64,000 nucleotides of DNA from Hypanus sabinus (Eukaryota). Positions within the stretch are counted from its first letter, which is position 1. Each line of letters begins with the position of its first letter. This document shows, one piece after another, positions 19,224 to 52,760 of the stretch. The position numbers and the translations under genes are program-made. Below the pieces are notes generated by a model. It searched no databases, was not told the DNA's origin, and was given only the letters and a program-made list of their open reading frames with translations. The stretch is taken from NCBI RefSeq assembly GCF_030144855.1, contig NW_026778903.1, positions 434,001-498,000 on the forward strand, written 5' to 3'.

Positions 19224-19240
19224 TTTATTGTTACTTTATT
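19224..19240 (-). terminator. Tandem AATAAA polyadenylation signals, probably for the multi-V receptor gene
   Basis: tttatt at 19224-19229 and 19235-19240, about 670 nt past the stop at 19910. Confidence 0.5.
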
Positions 19241-19909: not shown

Positions 19910-20031
19910 CTAAACTGGGTGCGCTGGTTCGCTCTTGCTCTTTGGGAGCCGATACGCGATGGTCAGGAATAGCAGTGCGAGCGCCTTCAGGCTGAGCAGG
20001 ATGTAAAGAGGCAGTGGCTCCAGGGGAGAAC
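19910..20031 (-). CDS. Multi-V receptor: TM and short cytoplasmic exon GSPLEPLPLYILLSLKALALLFLTIAYRLPKSKSEPAHPV-stop, Lys in the TM
   Basis: atttactctcag acceptor, phase 1, 122 nt; hydrophobic run containing K; short basic tail without Tyr motifs. Confidence 0.85.
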
Positions 20032-20281
20032 CTGAGAGTAAATCGGAGTTCAGAGTGAGACGGTTCACCGAGGCGAGGTAGGGATGGGATGTATTCCGAG
20101 GGTTCAGGGGTTTATGTATAGAATCACATTGCTGGGAGTGGACCACAGGCTGGGATCTAATCCGAGCGTTCAGCGGGATAATATATATGAAATAACAGAA
20201 CTGGACATGCGGTCCAATCCCAGGAGGAATCAGGGAAGCGGCGGTGGAAAGTGAACCAGGGGAGAGATACCGGAGACTCAC

Positions 20282-20641
20282 CTCGTACCAGGAGCACGGT
20301 CCCGTTCCCTCGGAGCAGCAGCTGCCGGTCGGGAAGGTGAACGGACGCCAGGCAGCGGTAGGTGTTGGAGTGGCTCGGGCGGAGGTGCCGTAGTTGGAGG
20401 GAGAGTCCCGCGCCGATCTCACTCTCAGGTAGGGCGGCTTCCTGCTGGGATTCCTTGGGGGGCGGGTAGACGACACGTTCCTCTTCCCCCTCCCCCGTCC
20501 CGCCGATCACCCAGTAGGGGTAGATTATCACCCGGGGTTCCGTCAGCCCCAGAACTTCGCAGTGCAGCGTCACGTTGGAGCCACTAGGGACCTCCAACCT
20601 CCGAGGCCACTGGGACACGTGGAGGGTGGCGAGGGAGCTGT
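20282..20641 (-). CDS. Ig V(J)-type exon V1 (NKp30/NCR3-like)
   Basis: tgttacag acceptor, gtgagt donor, 360 nt, phase 1/1; VSQWP, LHC, YPYW, LSLQL, TYRC and J-like GNGTVLLV. Confidence 0.92.
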
Positions 20642-21892
20642 CTGTAACATGGTGAGGGAGGGAGAATGGTGAGGGTGCGTCTGTAACATGGTGAGGGAGG
20701 GAGAATGGGGAGGGTGCGTCTGTAACATAGTGAGGGAGCGTTTGTAACACAGAGCGATGGAGAGAGTGAAGTGGATGAGGGAGTTTCTGTAACACAGCTA
20801 GTGAGGGAGCGACTGTAACACGGAGGGAGAGAGGAGTGAAGGAACGTCTGTACACTAGAAGAGGATAGGAGGGGCAGAGATTAAATGTGGCGTGATGTTA
20901 AACTATAAAGAAAGAGTGAAACATGATTCTTTCTTGGTTTGTGTCAAAATAAAAAGGAAGTCTGCCAGACAACATGGTGTGAACCCAGAGTGGAACGGAT
21001 TTGAGAAAGTGGATTGAGTACAAGACTCCAGCCTGTTGAGTAGATCATGATGAATAAAAGTTTGTGTCGGGAAGGCAAGGCCTTTGTCCAGGTACCAAAG
21101 AGTGACCCATCAGGGTGAGTTCTGGAGTAAGAGTTATGTTAGAGTTCCAAAGGGATATTGAAGGGTATAAATACGGGTAAAATTTTGTGTAAGTCGGGAG
21201 AAATTTCCAGCAGACCACGTTACGACCAGCGATAATGGTAGAAGTTGGGGAAGATAGAGACAAGGACGTCGTGTGAGAGAGGAAAAGAATTTAAAGATTG
21301 AGGGATCTGTGATTCCTTCACGCATCTGCAGATCAGCTCGTTCAGAGGACGGGAAGTGTTTTGTTTTCGCTACATCATTAACCTTTTGTTTTCGTTTTTG
21401 TATTGCATGGTTATAAAAAACTAATAAAACAATTCGTTGTAGTTTAACACGTGTACAGTTGTCCCCTTTGTTTGTCAATACAGACCCGAATGCCTATTGC
21501 TGAATCGGTAAAGAACACGGAACGAAATTTCAAACAATTATCGTCAGGCAAACACAGCCCAAAATCGGGCAAACTCTGCCTAACCCTCCCACTTCTCCCC
21601 GTGTCCTTCCTCCCATTCAACCCGTGTCCATGACATTTCCCTTCCCTGCCCTCCACAGGCGTCCCCTCCTCCCTCTCTCCCACCGCGATTCTCCAGCTCC
21701 CTCATCCCCTCAGACTTGCACAATTCATCCAAAGATACATAGATGTACTGCCCATGATCCGGTTAGAGACTGGGATCTAACCCAGCAAGTCAGGAAAATT
21801 ATACATATTAAAACTGAACAGGATATTGGATTGGATCCCAGTAGGCAATCGGGAATCCGCGGGGATTAAGGGCAGTGGGACCGGAGACTCAC

Positions 21893-22252
21893 CTCGTACC
21901 AGGAGCACGGTCCCGTTCCCTCGGAGCAGCAGCTGCCGGTCGGGAAGATGAACGGACGCCAGACAGCGGTAGGTGTTGGAGTGGCTCGGGCGGAGGTGCC
22001 GGAGTTGGAGGGAGAGTCCCGCGCCGATCTCACTCTCAGGTAGGGCGGCTTCCTGCTGGGATTCCTTGGGCGGCGGGTAGACGACACGTTCCTCTTCCCC
22101 CTCCCCCGTCCCGCCGATCACCCAGTAGGGGTAGATTATCACCCGGGGTTCCGTCAGCCCCAGAACTTCGCAGTGCAGCGTCACGTTGGAGCCACTCGGG
22201 ACCTCCAACCTCTGAGGCCACTGGGACGCGTAGAGGGTGGCGACGGAGCTGT
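21893..22252 (-). CDS. Ig V(J)-type exon V2
   Basis: 360 nt, intact frame and splice sites; N-terminus DSSVATLYASQWPQR. Confidence 0.92.
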
Positions 22253-23431
22253 CTGTAACACAGTGAGGGAGGGAGAATGGTGAATGAGCGCCTGTAACAC
22301 ATGAAGCGAGGTAGTGAGGGTGCGTCTGTAACACAGGGAGCGAAGGACAGTGTTAGTGAAGGACTGTCTGTACACAGGAAAGAGGAATGGAGGGGCAGAG
22401 ATGAAACGTTATGTGATATCAAATTGTAAGGCAAGAATTAAACACGATTCGTCCTATGGTATGTGCTAAAATAAAAAGGAAGTCTGCCAGACAACATGGT
22501 GTTAACCCGGAGTGGAACTGATTTGAGAAAGTGGATTAAGTACAAGTCTCCAGCATGGAGCGTAGATCATGATTAATAAATGTTTGTGTCGGGAAGGCGA
22601 GGACTTTGTCCAGGTCACAAATAGTGACCCCTCAGGGAGAGTTCTGGGGTAACGGTTATGTTAGAGCTTTAAATGGATATTGAAAGGTATAAATACGGGT
22701 AAATCTTTGAGAAAGTCGGGAGAATTTTCCACCAGACCACGTTGCGACCAGTAATAATGCTAAGAGTTGGGGCAAATAGAGACAAGTAAGTCGAGTGAGA
22801 GAGAGAAAGAGAGGGAGATGGAAGTTTGTGGGATCTGTGATTCCTTCCCGCATCTGCAGATCAGCTCGATCAGTGGACGCGAAGTGTTTGTTTTTCGCGA
22901 CATCCTTAACCCTTGGTTTTCCTTTTTATATTGCATGGTTATACAACACAAATAAAACAATTTGTTGTAGTTAAAAACGTGTACAGTTGTCCCCTTTGTT
23001 TGTCAATACAGACCCGAATGCCTATTGCTGAATCAGTAAAGAACACGGAACGAACTTTCAAACAATTATCGTCAGGCAAACACAGCTCAAAATCGGGCAA
23101 ACTCTGCCTAACCCTCCCACTTCTCCCCATGTCCTTCCACCCATTCAACCCGTGTCCATGACATTTCCCTTCACTGCCCTCCACAGGCGTCCCCTCCGCC
23201 CTCTCTCCCACCGCGATTCTCCAGCTCCCTCATCCCCTCAGACTTGCACAATTCATCGAAAGATACACAGATGTACTGCCCATGATCCGGTTAGAGACTG
23301 GGATCTAACCCAGCAAGTCAGGAAAATTATATATATTAAAGCGGAACAGGATATTGGATTGGATCCCAGTAGGCAATCGGGAATCCGCGGGCAGCTAGTG
23401 GGGATTAAGGGCAGTGGGACCGGAGACTCAC

Positions 23432-23791
23432 CTCGTACCAGGAGCACGGTCCCGTTCCCTCGGAGCAGCAGCTGCCGGTCGGGAAGGTGAACGGACGCCA
23501 GACAGCGGTAGGTGTTGGAGTGGCTCGGGCGGAGGTGCCGGAGTTGGAGGGAGAGTCCCGCGCCGATCTCACTCTCAGGTAGGGCGGCTTCCTGCTGGGA
23601 TTCCTTGGGGGGCGGGTAGACGACACGTTCCTCTTCCCCCTCCCCCGTCCCGCCGATCACCCAGTAGGGGTAGATTATCACCCGGGGTTCCGTCAGCCCC
23701 AGAACTTCGCAGTGCAGCGTCACGTTGGAGCCACTCGGGACCTCCAACCTCTGAGGCAACTGGGACACGTGGAGGGTGGCGAGGGAGCTGT
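23432..23791 (-). CDS. Ig V(J)-type exon V3
   Basis: 360 nt, intact; DSSLATLHVSQLPQR. Confidence 0.92.
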
Positions 23792-25440
23792 CTGTAACAC
23801 AGTGAGGGAGAGAGAATGGTGAGGCAGCGTCTGTAACTCAGAAAGGGAGGGAGTGTAGTGAGGTAGCAACGTAACACATGGAGGGTGGGAGAGGGTAGTG
23901 AAGGACTGTCTGTACACAGGAGAGAGGATTGGAGTGCAGAGAGTAAACCTGGAGTGATATCAAACTGTAAGGAAAGAGTTAACATTATTCATTCTTGGTA
24001 TGTGCTAAAATAAAAAAGGAAGTCTGCCAGACAACATGGTGTTAATCCGGAGCGGAACGGATCTGAGAAAGTGGAAGGAGTACAAGTCTCCAGCCTGGAG
24101 AGTAGATCATGATTAATACAAGTTTGCGTCGGGAAGGCGAGGCCTTTGTCCAGGTACCAAATAGAGTTCTGGGGTAAGAGTTATGTTAGAGTTTTAAAGG
24201 GATATTGAAGAGTATTAATACGGGTAAATCTTTGTGTAAATGGGGAGATTTTTCCATCAGACCACGTTATGACCAGTGATAACGGTAAGAGTTGGGGAAG
24301 ATAGCGGTGAGGGAGCGTATGTAACACATGGAAAGAGGTGGAGAGAGTAGATAGGGAGCGACTGTAACACAGGGAGGGAGGGAGAAAGTAATGAAGGACT
24401 GTCTGTACACAGGAGGAGGAATGGAGGGGTAGGATTAAACGTGGAGTTTGATCAAACTGTAATGAAAGAGTTAACATTATTCGTTCTTGGTATGTGCTAA
24501 AATAAAAAAGGAAGTCTGCCAGACAAGATGGTGTTAATCCGGAGCGGAACGGATCTGAGAAAGTGGAAGGAGTACAAGTCTCCAGCCTGGAGAGTAGATC
24601 ATGATTAATACAAGTTTGTGTCGGGTAGGCGAGACCTTTGCCCAGGTACCAAATTGTGACCCATCAGAGAGAGTTCTAGCGTGAGAGTTGTGTTAGAGTT
24701 TTAAAGGATATCGAATGGTGTAACAACGGGTAAATCTTTGTGTCAGTCGGGAGAATTTTCTATCAGACCACGTTACGACCAGTGATAATGATAAGAGTTG
24801 GGGGAGATAGAGACAAGTACGTCCAGTGAGAGAGAGATGAATGTTTGTGGGATCTGTGATTCCTTCCGGCATCTGCAGATCAGCTCGTTCAGTGGATGGG
24901 AAGTGTTTGTTTTTCGCTGACATACTGAATCCTTCGTTTTTCTTCTTGGATTACATGGTTATATAATTCTAATAAAACAATTTATTGTAGTTTAACATGT
25001 GTACACTTGTCCCCTTTGTTTGTCATTACAGACCCGAATGCATATTGCTGAATCAGTAAAGAACACGGAACGAAATTTCAAACAATTATCGTTAGGCAAA
25101 TACAGACCAAATTCGGGCAAACTCTGCCTTACCCTCCCACTGCTGCCCAGGTCCTTCCACCCATTCAACCCGTGTCCATGACATTTCCCTTCCCTGCCCT
25201 CCACAGGCGTCCCCTCCTCCCTCTCTCCCACCGCGATTCTCCAGCTCCCTCATGCCTTCAGACTTGCACAAATCATCCAAAGATACATAGATGTACTGCC
25301 CATGATCCGGTTAGAGACTGGGATCTAACCCAGCAAGTCAGGAAAATTATATATATTAAAACTGAACAGGATATTGTTTTGGATCCCCGTAGGCAATCGG
25401 GAATCGGCGGGGATTAAGGGCAGTGGGACCTGAGACTCAC

Positions 25441-25800
25441 CTCGTACCAGGAGCACGGTCCCGTTCCCTCGGAGCAGCAGCTGCCGGTCGGGAAGGTGAA
25501 CGGACGCCAGGCAGCGGTAGGTGTTGGAGTGGCTCGGACGGAGGTGCCGGAGTTGGAGGGAGAGTCCCGCGCCGATCTCACTCTCAGGTAGGGCGGCTTC
25601 CTGCTGGGATTCCTTGGGGGGCGGGTAGACGACACGTTCCTCTTCCCCCTCCCCCGTCCCGCCGATCACCCAGTAGGGGTAGATTATCACCCGGGGTTCC
25701 GTCAGCCCCAGAACTTCGCAGTGCAGCGTCACGTTGGAGCCACTCGGGACCTCCAACCTCCGAGGCCACTGGGACACGTGGAGGGTGGCGAGGGAGCTGT
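25441..25800 (-). CDS. Ig V(J)-type exon V4
   Basis: 360 nt, intact; DSSLATLHVSQWPRR. Confidence 0.92.
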
Positions 25801-26955
25801 CTGTAACACAGTGAGGGAGGGAGAATGGTGAGGCAGCGTCTGTATCTCAGAGAGGGAGGGAGTGTAGTGAGGTAGCGTCGTAACACATGGAGTGTGGGAG
25901 AGGGTAGTGAAGGACTGTCAGTACACAGGAGTGAGGATAGGAGTGCAGAGAGTAAACGCGTAGTGATATCAAACTGTAAGGAAAGAGTTAAACATTATTC
26001 GTTCTTGGTATGTGCTAAAATGAAAAAGGAATTCTGTCAGACAACATGGTGTTAACCCGGAGTGGAACTGATTTGAGAAGGTTGAATGAGTACAAGTCTC
26101 CAGCCTGGAGAGTAGATCATGCTGAATTCAAGTTTGTGTCGGGAAGGCGAGGCCTTTGTCCAGGCACCAAATAGCGTTCTGGGGTACGAGTTATGTTCGA
26201 GTTTTAAAGGGATATTGAAGGGTATTAATACGGGTAAATCTTTGTGTAAATGGGGATATTTTTCTATCAGACCACGTTACGACCAGTGATAATGATAAGA
26301 GTTGGCGGAGATAGAGACAAGTTCATTCAGCGAGAGAGAGATGGAAGTTTGTGGGATCTGTGATTCCTTCCGGCATCTGCAGATCAGCTCGTTCAGTGGA
26401 TGGGAAGTGTTTGTTTTTCGCTGACATCCTGAACCCTTCGTTTTTCTTCTTGCATTACATGGTTATATAATTCTAATAAAACAATTTATTGTAGTTTAAC
26501 ATGTGTACAGTTGTCCCCTTTGTTTGTCATTACAGACCCGAATGCATATTGCTGAATCAGTAAAGAACACGGAACGAAATTTCAAACAATTATCGTTAGG
26601 CAAAAACAGCCCAAAATCGGGCAAACTCTGCCTAACCCTCCCACTTCTGCCCATGTCCTTCCACCCATTCAACCCGTGTCCATGACATTTCCCTTCCCTG
26701 CCCTCCACAGGCGTCCCCTCCTCCCTCTCTCCCACCGCGATTCTCCAGCTCCCTCATCCCCTCAGACTTGCACAATTCATCGAAAGATACACAGATGTAC
26801 TGCCCATGATCCGGTTAGAGACTGGGATCTAACCCAGCAAGTCAGGAAAATTATATATATTAAAGCGGAACAGGATATTGGATTGGATCCCAGTAGGCAA
26901 TCGGGAATCCGCGGGCAGCCAGTGGGGATTAAGGGCAGTAGGACCGGAGACTCAC

Positions 26956-27315
26956 CTCGTACCAGGAGCACGGTCCCGTTCCCTTGGAGCAGCAGCTGCC
27001 GGTCGGGAAGGTGAACGGACGCCAGACAGCGGTAGGTGTTGGAGTGGCTCGGGCGGAGGTGCCGGAGTTGGAGGGAGAGTCCCGCGCCGATCTCACTCTC
27101 AGGTAGGGCGGCTTCCTGCTGGGATTCCTTGGGCGGCGGGTAGACGACACGTTCCTCTTCCCCCTCCCCCGTCCCGCCGATCACCCAGTAGGGGTAGATT
27201 ATCACCCGGGGTTCCGTCAGCCCCAGAACTTCGCAGTGCAGCGTCACGTTGGAGCCACTCGGGACCTCCAACCTCTGAGGCAACTGGGACACGTAGAGGG
27301 TGGCGACGGAGCTGT
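26956..27315 (-). CDS. Ig V(J)-type exon V5
   Basis: 360 nt, intact; DSSVATLYVSQLPQR and LLLQGNGT. Confidence 0.92.
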
Positions 27316-28494
27316 CTGTAACATAGTGAGGGAGGGAGAATGGTGAATGAGCGCCTGTAACACATGAAGCGAGGTAGTGAGGGTGCGTCTGTAACACAGG
27401 GAGCGAAGGACAGTGTTAGTGAAGGACTGTCTGTACACAGGAAAGAGGAATGGAGGGGCAGAGATGAAACGTTATGTGATATCAAATTGTAAGGCAAGAA
27501 TTAAACACGATTCGTCCTATGGTATGTGCTAAAATAAAAAGGAAGTCTGCCAGACAACATGGTGTTAACCCGGAGTGGAACTGATTTGAGAAAGTGGATT
27601 AAGTACAAGTCTCCAGCATGGAGCGTAGATCATGATTAATAAATGTTTGTGTCGGGAAGGCGAGGACTTTGTCCAGGTCACAAATAGTGACCCCTCAGGG
27701 AGAGTTCTGGGGTAACGGTTATGTTAGAGCTTTAAATGGATATTGAAAGGTATAAATACGGGTAAATCTTTGAGAAAGTCGGGAGAATTTTCCACCAGAC
27801 CACGTTACGACCAGTAATAATGCTAAGAGTTGGGGCAAATAGAGACAAGTACGTCGAGTGAGAGAGAGAAAGAGAGGGAGATGGAAGTTTGTGGGATCTG
27901 TGATTCCTTCCCGCATCTGCAGATCAGCTCGATCAGTGGACGCGAAGTGTTTGTTTTTCGCGACATCCTTAACCCTTGGTTTTCCTTTTTATATTGCATG
28001 GTTATACAACACAAATAAAACAATTTGTTGTAGTTAAAAACGTGTACAGTTGTCCCCTTTGTTTGTCAATACAGACCCGAATGCCTATTGCTGAATCAGT
28101 AAAGAACACGGAACGAACTTTCAAACAATTATCGTCAGGCAAACACAGCTCAAAATCGGGCAAACTCTGCCAAACCCTCCCACTTCTGCCCATGTCCTTC
28201 CACCCATTCAACCCGTGTCCATGACATTTCCCTTCACTGCCCTCCACAGGCGTCCCCTCCTCCCTCTCTCCCACCGCGATTCTCCAGCTCCCTCATCCCC
28301 TCAGACTTGCACAATTCATCGAAAGATACACAGATGTACTGCCCATGATCCGGTTAGAGACTGGGATCTAACCCAGCAAGTCAGGAAAATTATATATATT
28401 AAAGCGGAACAGGATATTGGATTGGATCCCAGTAGGCAATCGGGAATCCGCGGGCAGCTAGTGGGGATTAAGGGCAGTGGGACCGGAGACTCAC

Positions 28495-28854
28495 CTCGTA
28501 CCAGGAGCACGGTCCCGTTCCCTCGGAGCCGCAGCTGCCGGTCGGGAAGGTGAACAGACGCCAGACAGCGGTAGGTGTTGGAGTGGCTCGGGCGGAGGTG
28601 CCGGAGTTGGAGGGAGAGTCCCGCGCCGATCTCACTCTCAGGTAGGGCGGCTTCCTGCTGGGATTCCTTGGGGGGCGGGTAGACGACACGTTCCTCTTCC
28701 CCCTCCCCCGTCCCGCCGATCACCCAGTAGGGGTAGATTATCACCCGGGGATCCGTCAGCCCCAGAACTTCGCAGTGCAGCGTCACGTTGGAGCCACTCG
28801 GGACCTCCAACCTCTGAGGCAACTGGGACACGTAGAGGGTGGCGAGGGAGCTGT
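28495..28854 (-). CDS. Ig V(J)-type exon V6
   Basis: 360 nt, intact; LTDPRV and RQLRLRGNGT variants. Confidence 0.92.
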
Positions 28855-29989
28855 CTGTAACACAGTGAGGGAGAGAGAATGGTGAGGCAGCGTCTGTATC
28901 TCAGAGAGGGAGGGAGTGTAGTGAGGTAGCAACGTAACACATGGAGGGTGGGAGAGGGTAGTGAAGGACTGTCTGTACACAGGAGAGAGGATTGGAGTGC
29001 AGAGAGTAAACATGGAGTGATATCAAACTGTAAGGAAAGAGTTAACATTATTCGTTCTTGGTATGTGCTAAAATAAAAAAGGAAGTCTGCCAGACAACAT
29101 GGTGTTAATCCGGAGCGGAACGGATCTGAGAAAGTGGAAGGAGTACAAGTCTCCAGCCTGGAGAGTAGATCATGATTAATACAAGTTTGTGTCGGGAAGG
29201 CGAGGCCTTTGTCCAGGTACCAAATTGTGACCCATCAGAGAGAGTTCTAGCGTGAGAGTTGTGTTAGAATTTTAAAGGATATCGAATGGTGTAAGTACGG
29301 GTAAATCTTTGTGTCAGTCGGGAGAATTTTCTATCAGACCACGTTACGACCAGTGATAATGATAAGAGTTGGGGGAGATAGAGACAAGTACGTCCAGTGA
29401 GAGAGAGAGATGAAAGTTTGTGGGATCTGTGATTCCTTCCGGCATCTGCAGATCAGCTCGTTCAGTGGATGGGAAGTGTTTGTTTTTCGCTGACATCCTG
29501 AACCCTTCGTTTTTCTTCTTGCATTACATGGTTATATAATTCTAATAAAACAATTTATTGTAGTTTAACATGTGTACAGTTGTCCCCTTTGTTTGTCATT
29601 ACAGACCCGAATGCCTATTGCTGAATCAGTAAAGAACACGGAACGAAATTTCAAACAATTATCGTTAGGCAAATACAGACCAAATTCGGGCAAACTCTGC
29701 CTTACCCTCCCACTTCTCCCCATGTCCTTCCACCCATTCAACCCGTGTCCATGACATTTCCCTTCCCTGCCCTCCACAGGCGCGATTCTCCAGCTCCCTC
29801 ATGCCTTCAGACTTGCACAAATCATCCAAAGATACATAGATGTACTGCCCATGATCCGGTTAGAGACTGGGATCTAACCCAGCAAGTCAGGAAAATTATA
29901 TATATTAAAACTGAACAGGATATTGTTTTGGATCCCCGTAGGCAATCGGGAATCGGCGGGGATTAAGGGCAGTGGGACCTGAGACTCAC

Positions 29990-30349
29990 CTCGTACCAGG
30001 AGCACGGTCCCGTTCCCTCGGAGCAGCAGCTGCCGGTCGGGAAGGTGAACGGACGCCAGGCAGCGGTAGGTGTTGGAGTGGCTCGGGCGGAGGTGCCGGA
30101 GTTGGAGGGAGAGTCCCGCGCCGATCTCACTCTCAGGTAGGGCGGCTTCCTGCTGGGATTCCTTGGGGGGCGGGTAGACGACACGTTCCTCTTCCCCCTC
30201 CCCCGTCCCGCCGATCACCCAGTAGGGGTAGATTATCACCCGGGGTTCCGTCAGCCCCAGAACTTCGCAGTGCAGCGTCACGTTGGAGCCACTCGGGACC
30301 TCCAACCTCTGAGGCAACTGGGACACGTGGAGGGTGGCGAGGGAGCTGT
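29990..30349 (-). CDS. Ig V(J)-type exon V7
   Basis: 360 nt, intact frame and splice sites. Confidence 0.92.
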
Positions 30350-31504
30350 CTGTAACACAGTGAGGGAGGGAGAATGGTGAGGCAGCGTCTATATCTCAGA
30401 GAGGGAGGGAGTGTAGTGAGGTAGCGTCGTAACACATGGAGTGTGGGAGAGGGTAGTGAAGGACTGTCAGTACACAGGAGTGAGGATAGGAGTGCAGAGA
30501 GTAAACGCGGAGTGATATCAAACTGTAAGGAAATAGTTAAACATTATTCGTTCTTGGTATGTGCTAAAATAAAAAAGGAATTCTGTCAGACAACATGGTG
30601 TTAACCCGGAGTGGAACTGATTTGAGAAGGTTGAATGAGTACCAGTCTCCAGCCTGGAGAGTAGATCATGCTGAATTCAAGTTTGTGTCGGGAAGGCGAG
30701 GCCTTTGTCCAGGCACCAAATAGCGTTCTGGGGTACGAGTTATGTTCGAGTTTTAAAGGGATATTGAAGGGTATTAATACGGGTAAATCTTTGTGTAAAT
30801 GGGGATATTTTTCTATCAGACCACGTTACGACCAGTGATAATGATAAGAGTTGGCGGAGATAGAGACAAGTTCATTCAGCGAGAGAGAGATGGAAGTTTG
30901 TGGGATCTGTGATTCCTTCCGGCATCTGCAGATCAGCTCGTTCAGTGGATGGGAAGTGTTTGTTTTTCGCTGACATCCTGAACCCTTCGTTTTTCTTCTT
31001 GCATTACATGGTTATATAATTCTAATAAAACAATTTATTGTAGTTTAACATGTGTACAGTTGTCCCCTTTGTTTGTCATTACAGACCCGAATGCATATTG
31101 CTGAATCAGTAAAGAACACGGAACGAAATTTCAAACAATTATCGTTAGGCAAAAACAGCCCAAAATCGGGCAAACTCTGCCTAACCCTCCCACTTCTGCC
31201 CATGTCCTTCCACCCATTCAACCCGTGTCCATGACATTTCCCTTCCCTGCCCTCCACAGGCGTCCCCTCCTCCCTGTCTCCCACCGCGATTCTCCAGCTC
31301 CCTCATCCCCTCAGACTTGCACAATTCATCGAAAGATACACAGATGTACTGCCCATGATCCGGTTAGAGACTGGGATCTAACCCAGCAAGTCAGGAAAAT
31401 TATATATATTAAAGCGGAACAGGATATTGGATTGGATCCCCGTAGGCAATCGGGAATCCGCGGGCAGCCAGTGGGGATTAAGGGCAGTGGGACCGGAGAC
31501 TCAC

Positions 31505-31864
31505 CTCGTACCAGGAGCACGGTCCCGTTCCCTCGGAGCAGCAGCTGCCGGTCGGGAAGGTGAACGGACGCCAGGCAGCGGTAGGTGTTGGAGTGGCTCG
31601 GGCGGAGGTGCCGGAGTTGGAGGGAGAGTCCCGCGCCGATCTCACTCTCAGGTAGGGAGGCTTCCTGCTGGGATTCCTTGGGCGGCGGGTAGACGACACG
31701 TTCCTCTTCCCCCTCCCCCGTCCCGCCGATCACCCAGTAGGGGTAGATTATCACCCGGGGTTCCGTCAGCCCCAGAACTTCGCAGTGCAGCGTCACGTTG
31801 GAGCCACTCGGGACCTCCAACCTCTGAGGCAACTGGGACACGTGGAGGGTGGCGAGGGAGCTGT
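31505..31864 (-). CDS. Ig V(J)-type exon V8
   Basis: 360 nt, intact; QQEASLPE variant. Confidence 0.92.
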
Positions 31865-33008
31865 CTGTAACACAGTGAGGGAGGGAGAATGGTGAGGCAG
31901 CGTCTGTATCTCAGAGAGGGAGGGAGTGTAGTGAGGTAGCGTCGTAACACATGGAGTGTGGGAGAGGGTAGTGAAGGACTGTCAGTACACAGGAGTGAGG
32001 ATAGGAGTGCAGAGAGTAAACGCGGAGTGATATCAAACTGTAAGGAAATAGTTAAACATTATTCGTTCTTGGTATGTGCTAAAATAAAAAAGGAATTCTG
32101 TCAGAGAACATGGTGTTAACCCGGAGTGGAACTGATTTGAGAAGGTTGAATGAGTACCAGTCTCCAGCCTGGAGAGTAGATCATGCTGAATTCAAGTTTG
32201 TGTCGGGAAGGCGAGGCCTTTGTCCAGGCACCAAATAGCGTTCTGGGGTACGAGTTATGTTAGAGTTTTAAAGGGATATTGAAGGGTATTAATACGGGTA
32301 AATCTTTGTGTAAATGGGGATATTTTTCTATCAGACCACGTTACGACCAGTGATAATGATAAGAGTTGGCGGAGATAGAGACAAGTTCATTCAGCGAGAG
32401 AGAGATGGAAGTTTGTGGGATCTGTGATTCCTTCCGGCATCTGCAGATCAGCTCGTTCAGTGGATGGGAAGTGTTTGATTTTCGCTGACATCCTGAACCC
32501 TCCGTTTTTCTTCTTGCATTACATGGTTATATAATTCTAATAAAACAATTTATTGTAGTTTAACGAGTGTACAGTTGTCCCCTTTGTTTGTCAATGCAGA
32601 TCCGAATGCTTATTGCTGAATCAGTAAAGAACACGGAACGAAATTTCAAATAATTATCGTTAGGCAAACACAGCCCAAAATCGGGCAAACTCTGCCTTAC
32701 CCTCCCACTTCTGCCCATGTCCTTCCACCCATTCAACCCGTGTCCATGACATTTCCCTTCCCTGCCCTCCACAGGCGTCCCCACCTCCCTCTCTCCCACC
32801 GCGATTCTCCAGCTCCCTCATCCCCTCAGACTTGCACAATTCATCGAAAGATACACAGATGTACTGCCCATGATCCGGTTAGAGACTGGGATCTAACCCA
32901 GCAAGTCAGGAAAATTATATATATTAAAGCGGAACAGGATATTGGATTGGATCCCAGTAGGCAATCGGGAATCCGCGGGGATTAAGGGCAGTAGGACCGG
33001 AGACTCAC

Positions 33009-33368
33009 CTCGTACCAGGAGCACGGTCCCGTTCCCTCGGAGCAGCAGCTGCCGGTCGGGAAGGTGAACAGACGCCAGACAGCGGTAGGTGTTGGAGTGG
33101 CTCGGGCGGAGGTGCCGGAGTTGGAGGGAGAGTCCCGCGCCGATCTCACTCTCAGGTAGGGCGGCTTCCTGCTGGGATTCCTTGGGCGGCGGGTAGACGA
33201 CACGTTCCTCTTCCCCCTCCCCCGTCCCGCCGATCACCCAGTAGGGGTAGATTATCACCCGGGGTTCCGTCAGCCCCAGAACTTCGCAGTGCAGCGTCAC
33301 GTTGGAGCCACTCGGGACCTCCAACCTCTGAGGCCACTGGGACACGTAGAGGGTGCCGAGGGAGCTGT
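33009..33368 (-). CDS. Ig V(J)-type exon V9
   Basis: 360 nt, intact; DSSLGTLYVSQWPQR. Confidence 0.92.
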
Positions 33369-34523
33369 CTGTAACACAGTGAGGGAGGGAGAATGGTGAG
33401 GCAGCGTCTGTATCTCAGAGAGGGAGGGAGTGTAGTGAGGTAGCGTCGTAACACATGGAGTGTGGGAGAGGGTAGTGAAGGACTGTCAGTACACAGGAGT
33501 GAGGATAGGAGTGCAGAGAGTAAACGCGGAGTGATATCAAACTGTAAGGAAATAGTTAAACATTATTCGTTCTTGGTATGTGCTAAAATAAAAAAGGAAT
33601 TCTGTCAGACAACATGGTGTTAACCCGGAGTGGAACTGATTTGAGAAGGTTGAATGAGTACCAGTCTCCAGCCTGGAGAGTAGATCATGCTGAATTCAAG
33701 TTTGTGTCGGGAAGGCGAGGCCTTTGTCCAGGCACCAAATAGCGTTCTGGGGTACGAGTTATGTTAGAGTTTTAAAGGGATATTGAAGGGTATTAATACG
33801 GGTAAATCTTTGTGTAAATGGGGATATTTTTCTATCAGACCACGTTACGACCAGTGATAATGATAAGAGTTGGCGGAGATAGAGACAAGTTCATTCAGCG
33901 AGAGAGAGATGGAAGTTTGTGGGATCTGTGATTCCTTCCGGCATCTGCAGATCAGCTCGTTCAGTGGATGGGAAGTGTTTGTTTTTCGCTGACATCCTGA
34001 ACCCTTCGTTTTTCTTCTTGCATTACATGGTTATATAATTCTAATAAAACAATTTATTGTAGTTTAACGAGTGTACATTTGTCCCCTTTGTTTGTCAATG
34101 CAGATCCGAATGCTTATTGCTGAATCAGTAAAGAACACGGAACGAAATTTCAAATAATTATCGTTAGGCAAACACAGCCCAAAATCGGGCAAACTCCGCC
34201 TTACCCTCCCACTTCTGCCCATGTCCTTCCACCCATTCAACCCGTGTCCATGACATTTCCCTTCCCTGCCCTCCACAGGCGTCCCCTCCGCCCTCTCTCC
34301 CACCGCGATTCTCCAGCTCCCTCATCCCCTCAGACTTGCACAATTCATCGAAAGATACACAGATGTACTGCCCATGATCCGGTTAGAGACTGGGATCTAA
34401 CCCAGCAAGTCAGGAAAATTATATATATTAAAGCGGAACAGGATATTGGATTGGATCCCAGTAGGCAATCGGGAATCCGCGGGCAGCTAGTGGGGATTAA
34501 GGGCAGTGGGACCGGAGACTCAC

Positions 34524-34883
34524 CTCGTACCAGGAGCACGGTCCCGTTCCCTCGGAGCAGCAGCTGCCGGTCGGGAAGGTGAACGGACGCCAGACAGCGG
34601 TAGGTGTTGGAGTGGCTCGGGCGGAGGTGCCGGAGTTGGAGGGAGAGTCCCGCGCCGATCTCACTCTCAGGTAGGGCGGCTTCCTGCTGGGATTCCTTGG
34701 GCGGCGGGTAGACGACACGTTCCTCTTCCCCCTCCCCCGTCCCGCCGATCACCCAGTAGGGGTAGATTATCACCCGGGGTTCCGTCAGCCCCAGAACTTC
34801 GCAGTGTAGCGTCACGTTGGAGCCACTCGGGACCTCCAACCTCTGAGGCAACTGGGACACGTGGAGGGTGGCGAGGGAGCTGT
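34524..34883 (-). CDS. Ig V(J)-type exon V10
   Basis: 360 nt, intact frame and splice sites. Confidence 0.92.
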
Positions 34884-36042
34884 CTGTAACACAGTGAGGG
34901 AGGGAGAATGGTGAGGCAGCGTCTGTATCTCAGAGAGGGAGGGAGTGTAGTGAGGTAGCGACGTAACACATGGAGGGTGGGAGAGGGTAGTGAAGGACTG
35001 TCTGTACACAGGAGAGAGGATTGGAGTGCCGAGAGTAAACGTGGAGTGATATCAAACTGTAAGGAAAGAGTTAACATTATTCGTTCTTGGTATGTGCTAA
35101 AATAAAGAAGGAAGTTCTCCAGACAACATGGTGTTAATCCGGAGTGGAACGGATTTGAGAAAGTGGAATGAGTACAAGTCTCCAGCCTGGAGAGTAGATT
35201 ATGATTAATACAAGTTTGCGTCGGGAAGGCGAGGACTTTGCCCAGGTACCAAATTGTGACCCATCAGAGAGAGTTCTAGCGTGAGAGTTGTGTTAGAATT
35301 TTAAAGGATATCGAATGGTGTAAGTACGGGTAAATCTTTGTGTCAGTCGGGAGAATTTTCTATCAGACCACCTTACGACCAGTGATAATGATAAGAGTTG
35401 GGGGAGATAGAGACAAGTCCGTCCAGTGAGAGAGAGAGATGAATGTTTGTGGGATCTGTGATTCCTTCCGGCATCTGCAGATCAGCTCGTTCAGTGGAAG
35501 GGGAGTCTTTGCTTTTCGCTGACATCCGTAACCCTTCGTTTTTCTTCTTGCATTGCATGGATATATAATTCTAATAAAACAATTTATTGGAGTTTAACGT
35601 GTGTACAGTTGTCCCCTTTGTTTGTCAATGCAGATCCGAATGCTTATTGCTGAATCAGTAAAGAACACGGAACGAAATTTCAAATAATTATCGTTAGGCA
35701 AATACAGACCAAATTCGGGCAAACTCTGCCTTACCCTCCCACTTCTCCCCATGTCCTTCCACCCATTCAACCCGTGTCCATGACATTTCCCTTCCCTGCC
35801 CTCCACAGGCGTCCCCTCCTCCCTCTCTCCCACCGCGATTCTCCAGCTCCCTCATGCCTTCAGACTTGCACAAATCATCCAAAGATACATAGATGTACTG
35901 CCCATGATCCGGTTAGAGACTGGGATCTAACCCAGCAAGTCAGGAAAATTATATATATTAAAACTGAACAGGATATTGTTTTGGATCCCCGTAGGCAATC
36001 GGGAATCGGCGGGGATTAAGGGCAGTGGGACCGGAGACTCAC

Positions 36043-36402
36043 CTCGTACCAGGAGCACGGTCCCGTTCCCTCGGAGCAGCAGCCGCCGGTCGGGAAGGTG
36101 AACGGACGCCAGACAGCGGTAGGTGTTGGAGTGGCTCGGGCGGAGGTGCCGGAGTTGGAGGGAGAGTCCCGCGCCGATCTCACTCTCAGCTAGGGCGGCT
36201 TCCTGCTGGGATTCCTTGGGGGGCGGGTAGACGACACGTTCCTCTTCCCCCTCCCCCGTCCCGCCGATCACCCAGTAGGGGTAGATTATCATCCGGGGTT
36301 CCGTCAGCCCCAGAACTTCGCAGTGCAGAGTCACGTTGGAGCCACTCGGGACCTCCAACCTCTGAGGCCACTGGGACACGTAGAGGGTGGCCAGGGAGCT
36401 GT
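36043..36402 (-). CDS. Ig V(J)-type exon V11
   Basis: 360 nt, intact; PRMII, AALAESE and DRRLLLR variants. Confidence 0.92.
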
Positions 36403-37233
36403 CTGTAACATAGTGAGGGAGGGAGAATGGTGAGGGAGTGTCTGTATCTCAGAGAGGGAGGGAGTGTAGTGAGGTAGCGTCGTAACACATGGAGCGTTGG
36501 AGAGGGTAGTGAAGGACTGTCTGTTCACAGGGGAGAGGATAGGAGTGCAGAGAGTAAACGTGGAGTGATATCAAACTGTAAGGAAAGAGTTAAACATTAT
36601 TCGTTCTTGGTATGTGCTAAAATAAAAAAGGAATTCTGTCAGACAACATGGTGTTAACCCGGAGTGGAACTGATTTGAGAAGGTTGAATGTGTACAAGTC
36701 TCCAGCCTGGAGAGTAGATCATGCTGAATTCAAGTTTGTGTCGGGAAGGCGAGGCCTTTGTCCAGGTACCAAATAGAGTTCTGGGGTAAGAGTTATGTTA
36801 GAGTTTTAAAGGGATATTGAAGAGTATTAATACGGGTAAATCTGTGTGTAAATGGGGAGATTTTTCCATCAGACCACGTTATGACCAGTGATAACGGTAA
36901 GAGTTGGGGAAGATAGCGGTGAGGGAGCGTCTGTAACCGGTGAGGGAGCGGAGCGGGGCAGAGAGTGACCAGGATGCAGTGTCCAGAACAGCTCGAAGTC
37001 AGGCAACCTCTGCCCAATTTCAACCAGTTCCTCTGCCGACGACCCATGACCTTTCCCGAATCCATGACATTCCTCTGTCAACAACACGCGCCCCTTCTCC
37101 TTCACCCCTACATTGACATCCTAACTCATTCACCCGAAAACGACGGAATTTCTTCCCAACACTCGGCCCCTTCATGCGTACTATCACTCAATGGGGAACG
37201 GGGCCCCACAGACACAGACTCTTTCTGTCATTT

Positions 37234-37367
37234 NNNNNNNNNNNNNNNNNNNNNNNNNNNNNNNNNNNNNNNNNNNNNNNNNNNNNNNNNNNNNNNNNNN
37301 NNNNNNNNNNNNNNNNNNNNNNNNNNNNNNNNNNNNNNNNNNNNNNNNNNNNNNNNNNNNNNNNNNN
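37234..37367. other. Assembly gap (134 N) in the leader-to-V11 intron
   Basis: Run of N. Confidence 1.
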
Positions 37368-37376
37368 AGTTCTTAC

Positions 37377-37419
37377 CCAGTAGCAGGAGCAAGATCAGTT
37401 TCCGAAGCTGCGCCCTCAT
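37377..37419 (-). CDS. Multi-V receptor leader exon MRAQLRKLILLLLL
   Basis: ggcgATGA start, 43 nt, G|gtaaga phase-1 donor compatible with every V exon; basic-then-hydrophobic signal peptide. Confidence 0.85.
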
Positions 37420-37744
37420 CGCCCAGTCAAAGTATTTTCAATGAATACAGCTCTGAGGGCGCAAAAAGAAACTTAGCACAGTTTTTGCCGGGCCGAAGGG
37501 ACGCAATACCTTGCTGTAGTGAAATGCTCTGTATGGACGTGCAGAACAAAGTTTTTCACTGTGACAATAATAAACCAAGTTACCAGGTACATATTTCAAC
37601 GACAATATGCACACGTTGTCTCATTCAGGGAGCTGCGGACACAGCCCAAATACTGGCAAATTCTGCCCAGTACCCGTCCCCAACTCTCCCCGTGACCCCC
37701 CACCCAAACCTTCCATCCATAGCCATGACATTACACTCACCCCC

Positions 37745-37977: not shown

Positions 37978-38149
37978 CCCCCATACACGCCAGCTCCATT
38001 TACCACACAGTCCTCCCAGCTCCCTCTTCCCTTCACACCTCCACCATTTCATCCCTATCCGTTCATACACACACCCTCTCTCTAACTGCGTCCAATGGGC
38101 TAGTCTCAATACGACAAGTTAAAGTCAAGGCAGTAAATAGGAAACCGAT

Positions 38150-43307: not shown

Positions 43308-44514
43308 CCGTAAATTCCGGTGTATGAGCCGAGAATTTGACCCTAAATTTTACACCGAGGGTTCCAACTTTGAAAAACCGAATACACGGAAGACAGGTCG
43401 TATTTATTGGCTGTTTTTGAGTCAAATTGGTTCCACTGTCGACGCATCAATTCTTTGACGTGTTTAAACTCACATCTCGTGGCTTGAGCACGGATGTCAA
43501 ACCACCGGGGATGACTGCAATGTCCGTATTTTCAGCTTTCAGTGCTGCTTTTGTCTCACCTGACAAGTGCACTTTGAACGCGTCCCTGACATTAGCGACT
43601 TTTCCTTCCTGACACATTCGGGACATCGACGCCACACCTCTTTAACCCACGTCAAGCAACCGGCTTCGTCCATCCAGCACCGTTCTTGAACGTAAACAAC
43701 ACCCGGCGGGAATTTTCTGAGCAATCTTTGTTTTTTTGTCTCAACCCAAGATCACGTCTATTCATAAATCGGGTGCACCAACTTGGCGTAGCTTTGAAAT
43801 TTTCGCTGACCTCACGGTGTTTTCCAGGCCATTTCAACGCTTGAACTCGAATCATTTCTCTAGTAACAATGTATCCCGACAATCGTTGGTGATTCATCCA
43901 CTCTACAACTTTTTCTTCCAGTTCTGGCCACTGGCATGTTGTCCCGCAGTTTGCACATTTCGTCCTTGGCATTTCCCTCAGCGTGTCCTCTGCCTTTCTC
44001 CACTCTCTCACTCTCTCGTTTACACTGAACTTATTAGCAGCTGCAGAATTAATCGTTCCTCTACCAAAATCAACAACATTCAGCTTGAAGCCAGCATCAT
44101 ATCGCATTTGTTTTAATCTTTTGTACATGGCGGTTGCATACTCAATACTGAGTACACGTACTGATCCTGCCACCCCGTGTTATGTTTTAACGAGATTACG
44201 ATGGGCGCTAAATGGTTTCGCAGGGGTTACGTTGGAAACCTAATCCAAAATTTCCCTCCCTGATTTATTTATTAAGAATTCGCCTATAACGCTCTACAAT
44301 GTGTAGGGCTGTTTTCTTAGCAGGCACTGGTTCACAAAATTTCCAGGGTCCGGTTCCGGCAAAGCTGAGTACCGGCATGTGAGATTTTATGATCGTTTCT
44401 AGTTAAATCAAAAACTTCTACAAAAGGGGTCGTCTTATACAAAGGTAACATGAAAAAGGTCGCTTTTTTAAACTTGGAAATGGGGAGGGTCGGCTTATAC
44501 TCCGGAATATACGG
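43308..44514 (-). mobile_element. Internally deleted pogo/Tigger-family (POGK-like) DNA transposon
   Basis: TIRs ccgtaaattccggtgtatgagccg / cggcttatactccggaatatacgg, TA TSDs; ORF 43652-44173 encodes Brinker-like DBD plus CENP-B HTH; DDE pieces DAFKVH and IPGGLTS. Confidence 0.9.
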
Positions 44515-49549: not shown

Positions 49550-50540
49550 TTATACCCCTCTTTGTTGACTGTCCCTGTCAATAAAAAATACCCAATCAAC
49601 CAGTCCCGATAATACCTTTTCATAACTTGTCCACCACTGATGTCGACTCACTGGCCTATAATTTCCTGGATTATTCTCAGAGTCTTCCTTAAACAGCAGA
49701 GCAACAGTAGCCATTCTCCAGTCATCTGGTACCTCATCTGCTCTAAATATCTCTGCCAGGGCCCCTGCAATTTTTGCACTTGCTTTCCAAAGGGACACCT
49801 TGTCAGGCCCTGGGGATCTGTCCACCCTGACTTGCCTCAGGACAACAAACCCCTCCTCCTCTGTAATGAGTACAGATTCCACGGGCTCGATGCTGCTTTG
49901 CCTCTCTTCCATCGACTCTGTCCACCTCCTGACTGAATTCCTATGCAACATGTCCATTTAACATCTCCCCTCATTGCTTTTGACTCCACACTGATTACCA
50001 TTCTGATCTTCCAGAGGGCAAATTTTCTGCCTTGCAATCATTTTGCTCCTTCACCTTGTCTGCTGGAGCAAGCTCATGCCTTCTTTTAGCAACCTGATTT
50101 CTTCTTTAATGTTCTTCTGCATTTCTCCTACTCAACTACCTATCTGCGATGCACCTCCTTTTTTTCCTCAACCAGGACAGCAATATCTCTCAAAGCAAGC
50201 TTCCCTAAACCTGTTAACCTTGCCTTTTATTCTGACCAGCAGATACAAGCTTTGTCCTCTGAAAAGACCTCCCACTTATGAAGTTACCTTTGCCAGAAAA
50301 CATCCTGTCTGAATCCACACTTGCTAGATCCCTTCTGATACATCCAAGTTGTCTGAGTTAAACTCCATCTGCAATTCCTTGATTCAGTTCGCCAGGTCCT
50401 CTGGAACTCACTATAACATGAGATAACACCCTTCACTGCCCACTACCTCACCAATTTTGGTGATATGTACAAACTTATTTGAACAGGATGAGGGTGTCTG
50501 TAGATTGGGTGTTTGTAAACCCGTGACATATTGACTCCTG
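49550..50540 (-). mobile_element. CR1-type LINE fragment
   Basis: VDRSPGPDK, DDWRMATVALLFK and NPGNYRPVS motifs. Confidence 0.8.
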
Positions 50541-52140: not shown

Positions 52141-52350
52141 NNNNNNNNNNNNNNNNNNNNNNNNNNNNNNNNNNNNNNNNNNNNNNNNNNNNNNNNNNNN
52201 NNNNNNNNNNNNNNNNNNNNNNNNNNNNNNNNNNNNNNNNNNNNNNNNNNNNNNNNNNNNNNNNNNNNNNNNNNNNNNNNNNNNNNNNNNNNNNNNNNNN
52301 NNNNNNNNNNNNNNNNNNNNNNNNNNNNNNNNNNNNNNNNNNNNNNNNNN
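52141..52350. other. Assembly gap (210 N)
   Basis: Run of N. Confidence 1.
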
Positions 52351-52459: not shown

Positions 52460-52760
52460 TACGTGGGATCCCAGCCTGTAAGCTATGCCCATTGATCTGT
52501 TATTCTGTATATAAACCTCCCCAAGCCCCTGGATTAGACCCCAGCCTGTAACCCACACCCACAATCTGTTATTCTGTATATAAACCTCCCCAAGCCCCTG
52601 GATTAGACCCCAGCCTGTAACCCACTCCCACAATCTGTTATTCTGTATATAAACCCCCCAAGCCCCTGGATTAGACCCCAGCCTGTAACCTACTCCCACA
52701 ATCTGTTATTCTATAAATAAACCCCTGAACCCCTCGATTAGATCCCAGAAGGTAACCCAT
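52460..52760. repeat. 69-bp minisatellite, about 4 copies
   Basis: tattctgtat recurs at 52501, 52570 and 52639, with a variant at 52707. Confidence 0.9.

Follow-up and report, generated by a model that had tools for sequence, protein, structure and literature searches.

Studies of germline-joined VJ domains treat them as relics of the ancestor of the antigen receptors, and the known members, NKp30 among them, have one variable (V) domain. In the NKp30 (NCR3) design, a leader exon is combined with a germline-joined V domain of the VJ type, which is encoded in one exon and shows the pattern G-N-G-T-x-L-x-V in its G strand; the transmembrane (TM) segment contains a basic residue, and the short tail is free of motifs. 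Among the human natural cytotoxicity receptors, NKp44 uses a TM Lys with DAP12, while NKp30 uses a TM Arg with CD3-zeta or FcR-gamma (PMC6514059). A central TM Lys and a short tail are common to the DAP12-coupled receptors (NKp44, TREM, SIRP-beta, and activating KIR), which have 1-3 different immunoglobulin (Ig) domains. V-set domains in series (4-8) are found in the type I proteins of the EWI family (IGSF3, PTGFRN, IGSF8, and CD101), in which the domains are old and diverged from one another. Near-identical, in-frame exon units that stand in tandem, are all spliced in, and are changed in number by unequal crossing-over are known from LPA kringle IV-2 (KIV-2), the long homologous repeats of CR1, and the SRCR domains of DMBT1. 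In the cartilaginous fishes, the number of Ig domains in the modular domain immune-type receptors (MDIR) of skates is reported to range from 1 to 6. MDIR are Ig superfamily receptors with activating and inhibitory forms (PMC3031540). Here we analyzed a 64,000-nt stretch of the Hypanus sabinus genome (contig NW_026778903.1, positions 434,001 to 498,000; hereafter the window), in which a gene on the minus strand (19910-37419) was found to carry eleven VJ-type V exons, preceded by a single leader exon and followed by a single TM exon that encodes a Lys. Its design joins an NKp30-like plan of leader, VJ domain, and basic TM residue with an EWI-type serial V-set build and with intragenic repeat dynamics of the LPA KIV-2, CR1, and DMBT1 type. 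We consider it likely that this is a real gene and that it belongs to a family of type I receptors of stingrays and eagle rays (Myliobatiformes), which are composed of a signal peptide, n serial VJ-type V domains, a stalk, a Lys-bearing membrane span, and a 14-amino acid (aa) tail, and which give rise to serial poly-V products.

The exon structure of the gene was determined from leader to stop codon. The leader exon (37377-37419) starts with ATG, encodes MRAQLRKLILLLLL, and ends at a phase-1 donor (G/gtaaga, in the context CTGG/gtaaga). The V exons, numbered V1 to V11 from the leader side, are located at 36043-36402 (V1), 34524-34883 (V2), 33009-33368 (V3), 31505-31864 (V4), 29990-30349 (V5), 28495-28854 (V6), 26956-27315 (V7), 25441-25800 (V8), 23432-23791 (V9), 21893-22252 (V10), and 20282-20641 (V11), all on the minus strand. 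Each of the eleven is exactly 360 nt in length, is stop-free, and is flanked by the acceptor ttacag/AC and the donor CGAG/gtgagt, which places both of its ends in phase 1, such that every subset of V exons keeps the reading frame. The V exons are separated by ten spacers (introns of 1135-1649 nt, within 20642-36042) that fall into four lineages, and V11 is followed by a 250-nt intron (20032-20281). The TM exon (19910-20031; acceptor tctcag/GT) encodes a short stalk, the membrane span LPLYILLSLKALALLFLTIAY with its central Lys, and the 14-aa cytoplasmic tail, which was found to have neither an ITIM (immunoreceptor tyrosine-based inhibition motif) nor an ITAM (immunoreceptor tyrosine-based activation motif), and terminates with TAG at 19910-19912. 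When compared in pairs, the V exons differed at 1-10 of 360 nt, with V1 as the most divergent copy (7-10 nt from the other copies); at the protein level, they were 96-100% identical, four of the eleven encoding the same protein. Two N-glycosylation sequons (NVT and NGT) are present in each V domain. One leader, eleven intact V(J) exons, one Lys-bearing TM exon, and junctions that are all in phase 1 had been proposed previously from the letters of the window (hereafter the sequence-only reading); this anatomy was confirmed, as was the predicted length of the product, which is 174 aa if one V domain is included and 1374 aa if all eleven are.

The identity of the V domain was examined by sequence and fold comparison. 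The 360-nt exon encodes the whole domain, including the G strand RGNGTVLLV (GxGTxLxV pattern), and V2 was assigned to the Pfam V-set at an E-value of 7.5 × 10−8. By phmmer against the sequences of the PDB, the V domain was found to align end to end with the V-J regions of T-cell receptor (TCR)-alpha, J strand included. An AlphaFold2 (AF2) model of the domain (predicted local distance difference test [pLDDT] score of 85) superposed on Ig light-chain, TCR, and IgNAR V domains with a Z-score of ~13 and a root-mean-square deviation of 2.0-2.5 Å. The top ranks by Foldseek included IgNAR V, TCR-alpha V, SIRP-alpha, CD7, IGSF6, and TMIGD2. That the domain bears a J-like strand of its own was thus upheld by Pfam, phmmer, and AF2 superposition, and the V exons of the window encode a germline-joined VJ domain. 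SIRP V domains were among the best matches in both fold and sequence, and a profile search with alignment A1, which was dominated by a SIRP-like snake sequence in that alignment, yielded SIRP-type proteins alone. The domains of IGSF3 were also detected as fold matches (TM-score 0.71), which represents a generic V-set match, and the protein atlas yielded generic V-set neighbors only. NKp30 was not found within the top 60 phmmer and profile matches (PDB sequences), the top 30 Swiss-Prot models, or the top 50 PDB folds. The NKp30/NCR3 design suggested by the sequence-only reading stood in part: the VJ exon and the motif-free tail agree with it, as does the presence of a basic TM residue, here Lys and not Arg, but the single V domain per polypeptide does not, and TCR-alpha, Ig light-chain, IgNAR, SIRP, CD7, and TMIGD2 rank first. 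The resemblance to NKp30 is thus one of design and not a demonstrated relationship, and membership in that family is not established. An AF2 model of a 2-V paralogue product had a pLDDT of 35 and was discarded; no claim is made on interdomain geometry.

Relatives of the gene were identified in H. sabinus itself and in other rays, where they are labeled as uncharacterized by RefSeq. An exhaustive protein search returned XP_072911415 of Hemitrygon akajei ("uncharacterized protein isoform X2," 450 aa), in which three V domains (94% identity) stand between an identical leader and the same Lys-TM tail. Additional relatives included (i) H. sabinus LOC132385340, of 332 aa with two V domains, whose V domain is 100% identical to V2, V5, and V9 of the window; (ii) Mobula hypostoma LOC134350234, of 632 aa with five V domains; and (iii) 307-aa proteins with two V domains, one in Hemitrygon and one in Mobula, along with further Hemitrygon isoforms. 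Outside of the rays, the nearest relative found was a 175-aa protein from catshark, whose single V domain shows 40% identity. The leader peptide MRAQLRKLILLLLL is identical in the annotated relatives P0001, P0020, P0022, and P0023, and the relatives from Hemitrygon, Mobula, and catshark retain the TM Lys. At the genomic level, four loci were compared: H. sabinus LOC132385340 (L001), the locus of M. hypostoma (L002), and two loci of Hemitrygon (L003 and L004), which were located through the proteins P0018 and P0023. These loci share the same splice-site architecture and carry two (L001), three (L003), two (L004), and six (L002, the last frameshifted) V exons. In L001, L003, and L004, every genomic V exon was present in every annotated product, and the annotated products of the relatives with readable loci join V directly to V. 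The L001 locus was 95-98% identical to the window over ~7 kb, with homology that stops on both sides, and is therefore a paralogue and not the other haplotype. The sequence-only reading knew of no such arrangement for an NCR3-like gene, and our literature search likewise found no description of multi-V VJ receptors in rays. Differences in detail were also noted among the relatives. The TM exon of L001 (14006-14200) differs from that of the window at two stalk/TM residues and has Gln (CAG by inference) at the position of the TAG stop of the window, which makes its annotated tail 25 aa longer. In Mobula, the third V exon (L002, 21181-21540) is intact and absent from the RefSeq product, and the sixth (L002, 26020-26386) is frameshifted in a run of C (Pro codons), such that the annotated product loses the frame and terminates ahead of the TM segment; this frameshift reflects a true defect or, alternatively, an error in the homopolymer.

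The evolution of the array was examined by comparing exons with spacers. Within the array, segregating sites were found at 23 of 360 exon positions with no indels, compared with 182 of 927 positions and, per 1000 columns, 12 indel runs in the spacers (Fisher P = 6 × 10−10; probability of zero exon indels, 0.013). Across the eleven exons, the mean proportion of differences was 0.028 at synonymous sites (pS) and 0.013 at nonsynonymous sites (pN), while the spacers showed a mean difference of 0.086, which rose to 0.10-0.14 when lineages were compared with one another. Between Hypanus and Hemitrygon, the exon pS (0.058) was nearly equal to the divergence of the orthologous last spacer (0.060); thus, spacers and silent sites tick at the same rate. 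The spacers of the window were assigned to lineages A (I1, I5, and I8), B (I2, I3, I4, and I7), C (I6 and I9), and D (I10). In the spacer tree, Hs_I10 grouped with Ha3_I2, the last Hemitrygon spacer (100/100); Hs_I6 and Hs_I9 grouped with Ha3_I1, the spacer that comes first in the 3-V gene of Hemitrygon (100/96); and the A and B types grouped with spacers of 2-V genes (99/96). By this tree, at least three spacer lineages are older than the split of Hypanus and Hemitrygon, while the exons that lie between them are younger than that split. Old spacers combined with younger exons indicate concerted evolution that is confined to the exon and the ~300 nt that follow it. Recent block duplications are apparent in the I4/I7 (99.3% identical) and I6/I9 (99.5% identical) spacer pairs. 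The tandem unit, a V exon plus a spacer of ~1.2 kb, aligns as a whole between Mobula and the window at ~80% identity and predates the split of Mobula and Hypanus. Within the one Mobula gene, the V exons were found to be diverged from one another (pS 0.154, pN 0.078), with five of six intact, the framework conserved, and the C'-C'' part variable. Overall, these comparisons indicate that the V exons evolve in concert and under purifying selection, and by the same comparisons the multi-V design is old and maintained. One stretch at +100 to +300 nt after the donors was considered as a hidden element, as it is highly conserved within the array, but it was rejected because its divergence between Mobula and Hypanus is 0.25-0.36; it is read as a gene-conversion tract.

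An additional feature, missed in the sequence-only reading, was identified at the 5′ ends of the V exons. The 39 nt directly upstream of each V exon are part of a 39-nt tandem repeat, and in ten of the eleven V exons (all except V5), an in-frame alternative acceptor is present at −39 with an open 39-nt extension. Use of this acceptor adds a 13-aa Pro/Ser linker of the form D-A/T-A/P-SPFSLPH-x-VT. The linker is common to the annotated products P0022, P0018, P0021, and P0023, and isoforms of the annotated relatives were found to differ by the 13-aa insert DAPSPFSLPHCVT, which derives from an acceptor 39 nt upstream in the 39-nt repeat. Several transcript accessions are listed for each Hemitrygon isoform, and the isoforms differ in acceptor choice alone; given the practice of the NCBI pipeline, these accessions presumably reflect RNA support.

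These features are consistent with a mechanism in which the array would grow and shrink through unequal crossing-over between its units, and in which the primary transcript would be spliced from the leader to V1, through each V exon in turn to V11, and on to the TM exon. We infer this order of splicing because all splice sites share the same strong consensus and all junctions are in phase 1. By default, many or all of the V domains would be joined in one chain, yielding a rod with as many as eleven equal, doubly N-glycosylated domains (1374 aa) and an optional 13-aa Pro/Ser hinge wherever the −39 acceptor is used. A central Lys together with a short tail that lacks motifs is in keeping with an activating receptor coupled to an adaptor, as the sequence-only reading had proposed for this basic TM residue, and the Lys would recruit a putative ITAM-bearing adaptor of the DAP12/FcR-gamma class. 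Cell activation would then follow when a repetitive or clustered ligand is bound multivalently, with the identical domains providing avidity. Several points weigh against this proposal: (i) synonymous sites are homogenized as well, such that part of the exon similarity reflects gene conversion and not selection on the protein; (ii) the inclusion of all eleven exons is extrapolated from the 2-V and 3-V paralogues; (iii) the Mobula model omits one intact V exon of six, indicating that skipping can occur or that the model is wrong; (iv) near-identical neighboring domains are reportedly disfavored in general owing to a risk of misfolding, which argues against a stable 11-V product; (v) the adaptor partner and the ligand are both putative; and (vi) part of intron 1 is hidden by a gap. 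Nonetheless, of the three possibilities put forward by the sequence-only reading (a long polyvalent receptor, a cassette or exon-choice system, and a copy-number-variable reservoir), the long polyvalent receptor is the best supported, with relatives annotated with 2-5 serial V domains.

The same exon symmetry could also serve a different mode of expression, in which the eleven cassette exons are skipped in a stochastic or regulated manner and, together with the choice of the −39 acceptor, generate a ladder of receptors that contain 1-11 V domains and vary in the length of the hinge. Any subset of the exons is in frame, most of them (10 of 11) have an in-frame alternative acceptor of the kind used by the relatives, and one intact V exon is skipped in the Mobula model. 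However, the splice sites all share the same strong consensus with no exon marked as weak, the L001, L003, and L004 loci include every genomic V exon in every annotated isoform, no docking/selector complementarity was detected between the unique introns and the spacers, and skipping of identical exons would change length rather than specificity; such a ladder is thus considered unlikely, though it is the strongest of the competing explanations. The complementarity search also bears on the Dscam/protocadherin-style choice raised by the sequence-only reading. Like Dscam and the clustered protocadherins, the gene has a tandem array of alternative-looking exons between constant exons. Unlike in these systems, the proteins encoded by the window exons are 96-100% identical, and the individual exons were found to have neither a promoter nor a leader of their own; in addition, no 10- to 12-nt complementarity beyond an AT-rich run was detected between the spacers and the unique introns, of which part of intron 1 is hidden by the gap. 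As choosing among near-identical V exons creates no diversity, the logic of Dscam and protocadherin is not supported. A further reading is that the array is evolutionary froth, a recent neutral or polymorphic expansion by unequal crossing-over in which one or a few V exons are used or the locus is silent. The differences of only 1-10 nt among the V exons, the very recent block duplication recorded in the I4/I7 and I6/I9 spacers (99.3-99.5% identical), and the two V exons of the ~96% identical paralogue in the same assembly are in keeping with this possibility. It is rendered improbable by spacer lineages that predate the species split and yet are interspersed with eleven of eleven exons that are intact, indel-free, and ~3-fold less variable than the spacers, and by a multi-V structure that is kept in three genera, with the Mobula V exons both intact and diverged.

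The remaining explanations concern the integrity of the array and were assigned far less weight. Expansion of one or two real units to eleven by the assembler is very improbable: although the region is a tandem repeat with a gap of N at the array edge, there is no gap within the array, each unit differs from every other, and the spacers are 0.5-14% apart in substitutions and include four lineages with orthologues in another species. The gap (37234-37367) begins 9 nt beyond the leader donor and is thus inside intron 1, where it has no effect on any reading frame. Both of its flanks are colinear with the gap-free paralogue (L001 9678-10052 with window 37743-37368, and L001 10199-12407 with window 37233-35025), in which they are 146 nt apart compared with 134 N in the window. 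The simplest reading is that of a short intronic gap hiding no further units. Least probable of all is that the units are eleven separate single-V genes, each with a leader and a TM exon hidden in its spacer. A total of ~130 nt of DNA upstream of the leader does resemble part of each spacer (72-82%), but the units are only ~1.5 kb in size, annotated relatives splice V directly to V, and no leader-like ATG exon, TM-like exon, or leader relic above shuffled controls was detected in any spacer. The sequence-only reading had named hidden leader or TM exons as evidence that would overturn a single gene, and all spacers were searched accordingly: blastn and tblastn with the leader and TM exons revealed no second copy of either in the array; a scan for hydrophobicity and leader pattern identified no ATG-initiated hydrophobic phase-1 exon in any spacer; and Smith-Waterman alignment of the leader region with each spacer scored no higher than shuffled controls, leaving no leader relic in the spacers. 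The only recurring hydrophobic stretches in the spacers fall in different frames in different units. On the basis of these searches, the reading as eleven separate genes was rejected. A hydrophobic read-through tail after some donors was also evaluated as coding and was dismissed as non-coding, since only about half of the units have it in frame.

Compared with the systems described above, the gene under the favored reading of a serial poly-V receptor shares with NKp30 the leader exon, the single-exon germline-joined VJ domain with its G strand, the basic TM residue, and the short, motif-free tail, yet differs in having eleven V exons (2-6 in the relatives) rather than one and a Lys rather than the Arg of NKp30. 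The central TM Lys and short tail are also those of the DAP12-coupled receptors, but the gene has a near-identical V series in place of 1-3 different Ig domains, and its adaptor pairing is putative. Like the EWI proteins, the product would be a type I protein with V-set domains in series; in contrast to the old and diverged EWI domains, those of the window are near-identical, and no EWI tripeptide (Glu-Trp-Ile) was found in the V sequence of the window. We know of no EWI protein with a Lys-TM activating design. The LPA KIV-2-type arrays correspond in exon organization, as both consist of tandem, near-identical, frame-preserving exon units within one transcription unit, while they differ in domain type and gene class. 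Unit number was found to be 2, 2, 3, 6, and 11 across genes and species; thus, the proposal of a copy-number-variable reservoir was sustained in that copy number differs between paralogues and between species (2, 3, 6, and 11 V exons), which is the level at which such differences are known here. As with skate MDIR, the family belongs to the IgSF receptors of cartilaginous fishes, but the MDIR domains are CD300/TREM/pIgR-like, not VJ-type, and those within one protein are of different subfamilies.

Several other features of the locus were recorded. On the minus strand, two AATAAA sequences at 19224-19240, ~670 nt past the stop codon, are candidate polyadenylation signals. An AATAAA is also found on the gene strand ~+431 to +466 nt past the donors of V1-V5, V7, and V8 (7 of 10 spacers, lineages A and B) and is absent from spacer lineages C and D; intronic polyadenylation at these sites, giving truncated soluble V forms, is conceivable. 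The spacer after V8 (23792-25440) is ~500 nt longer than the others, and its ~514-nt pre-V segment is doubled (~23792-24305 and 24306-24810), the two copies lacking an intervening V exon; this pattern resembles a half unit devoid of V that remained after unequal exchange or deletion. Upstream of the leader, two segments (37639-37732 and 38016-38054; ~130 nt in total) resemble the sequences at ~+175 and ~+267 of every spacer, in the same order and at 72-82% identity, which hints that an early duplication included the 5′ flank. Transposable elements abound on either side of the receptor gene, with reverse transcriptase-like or transposase-like open reading frame fragments at 3683-4156, 43652-44173, 49550-49957, and 58833-59417, and no MHC marker gene was recognized in the 64-kb window. 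Adjoining a second N gap (52141-52350), 3-4 tandem copies of an element of ~60-110 nt were found on the plus strand at 52531-52748; this element is 76-81% identical to part of the V11-TM intron (20084-20200) and probably represents a short repeat family.

Overall, the gene represents a VJ exon that has been multiplied up to eleven times within one gene, with copies that are near-identical while the introns drift, in an arrangement that is kept in at least three ray genera. Beyond the favored reading of a serial poly-V receptor gene, we tentatively raise the broader possibility that rays evolved an activating receptor class that keeps its VJ domain in many identical copies by exon-restricted concerted evolution. 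Copy number (2-11 so far) may then be a fast-evolving and possibly polymorphic dial for avidity and reach, and the product may be a polyvalent rod of ~40 nm with optional 13-aa hinges provided by alternative 3′ splice sites, as an immune-receptor counterpart of the LPA kringle size polymorphism. The array is a clear natural case of exon-level concerted evolution, and if the long products are made, they would provide an innate receptor with avidity in a distinct manner.

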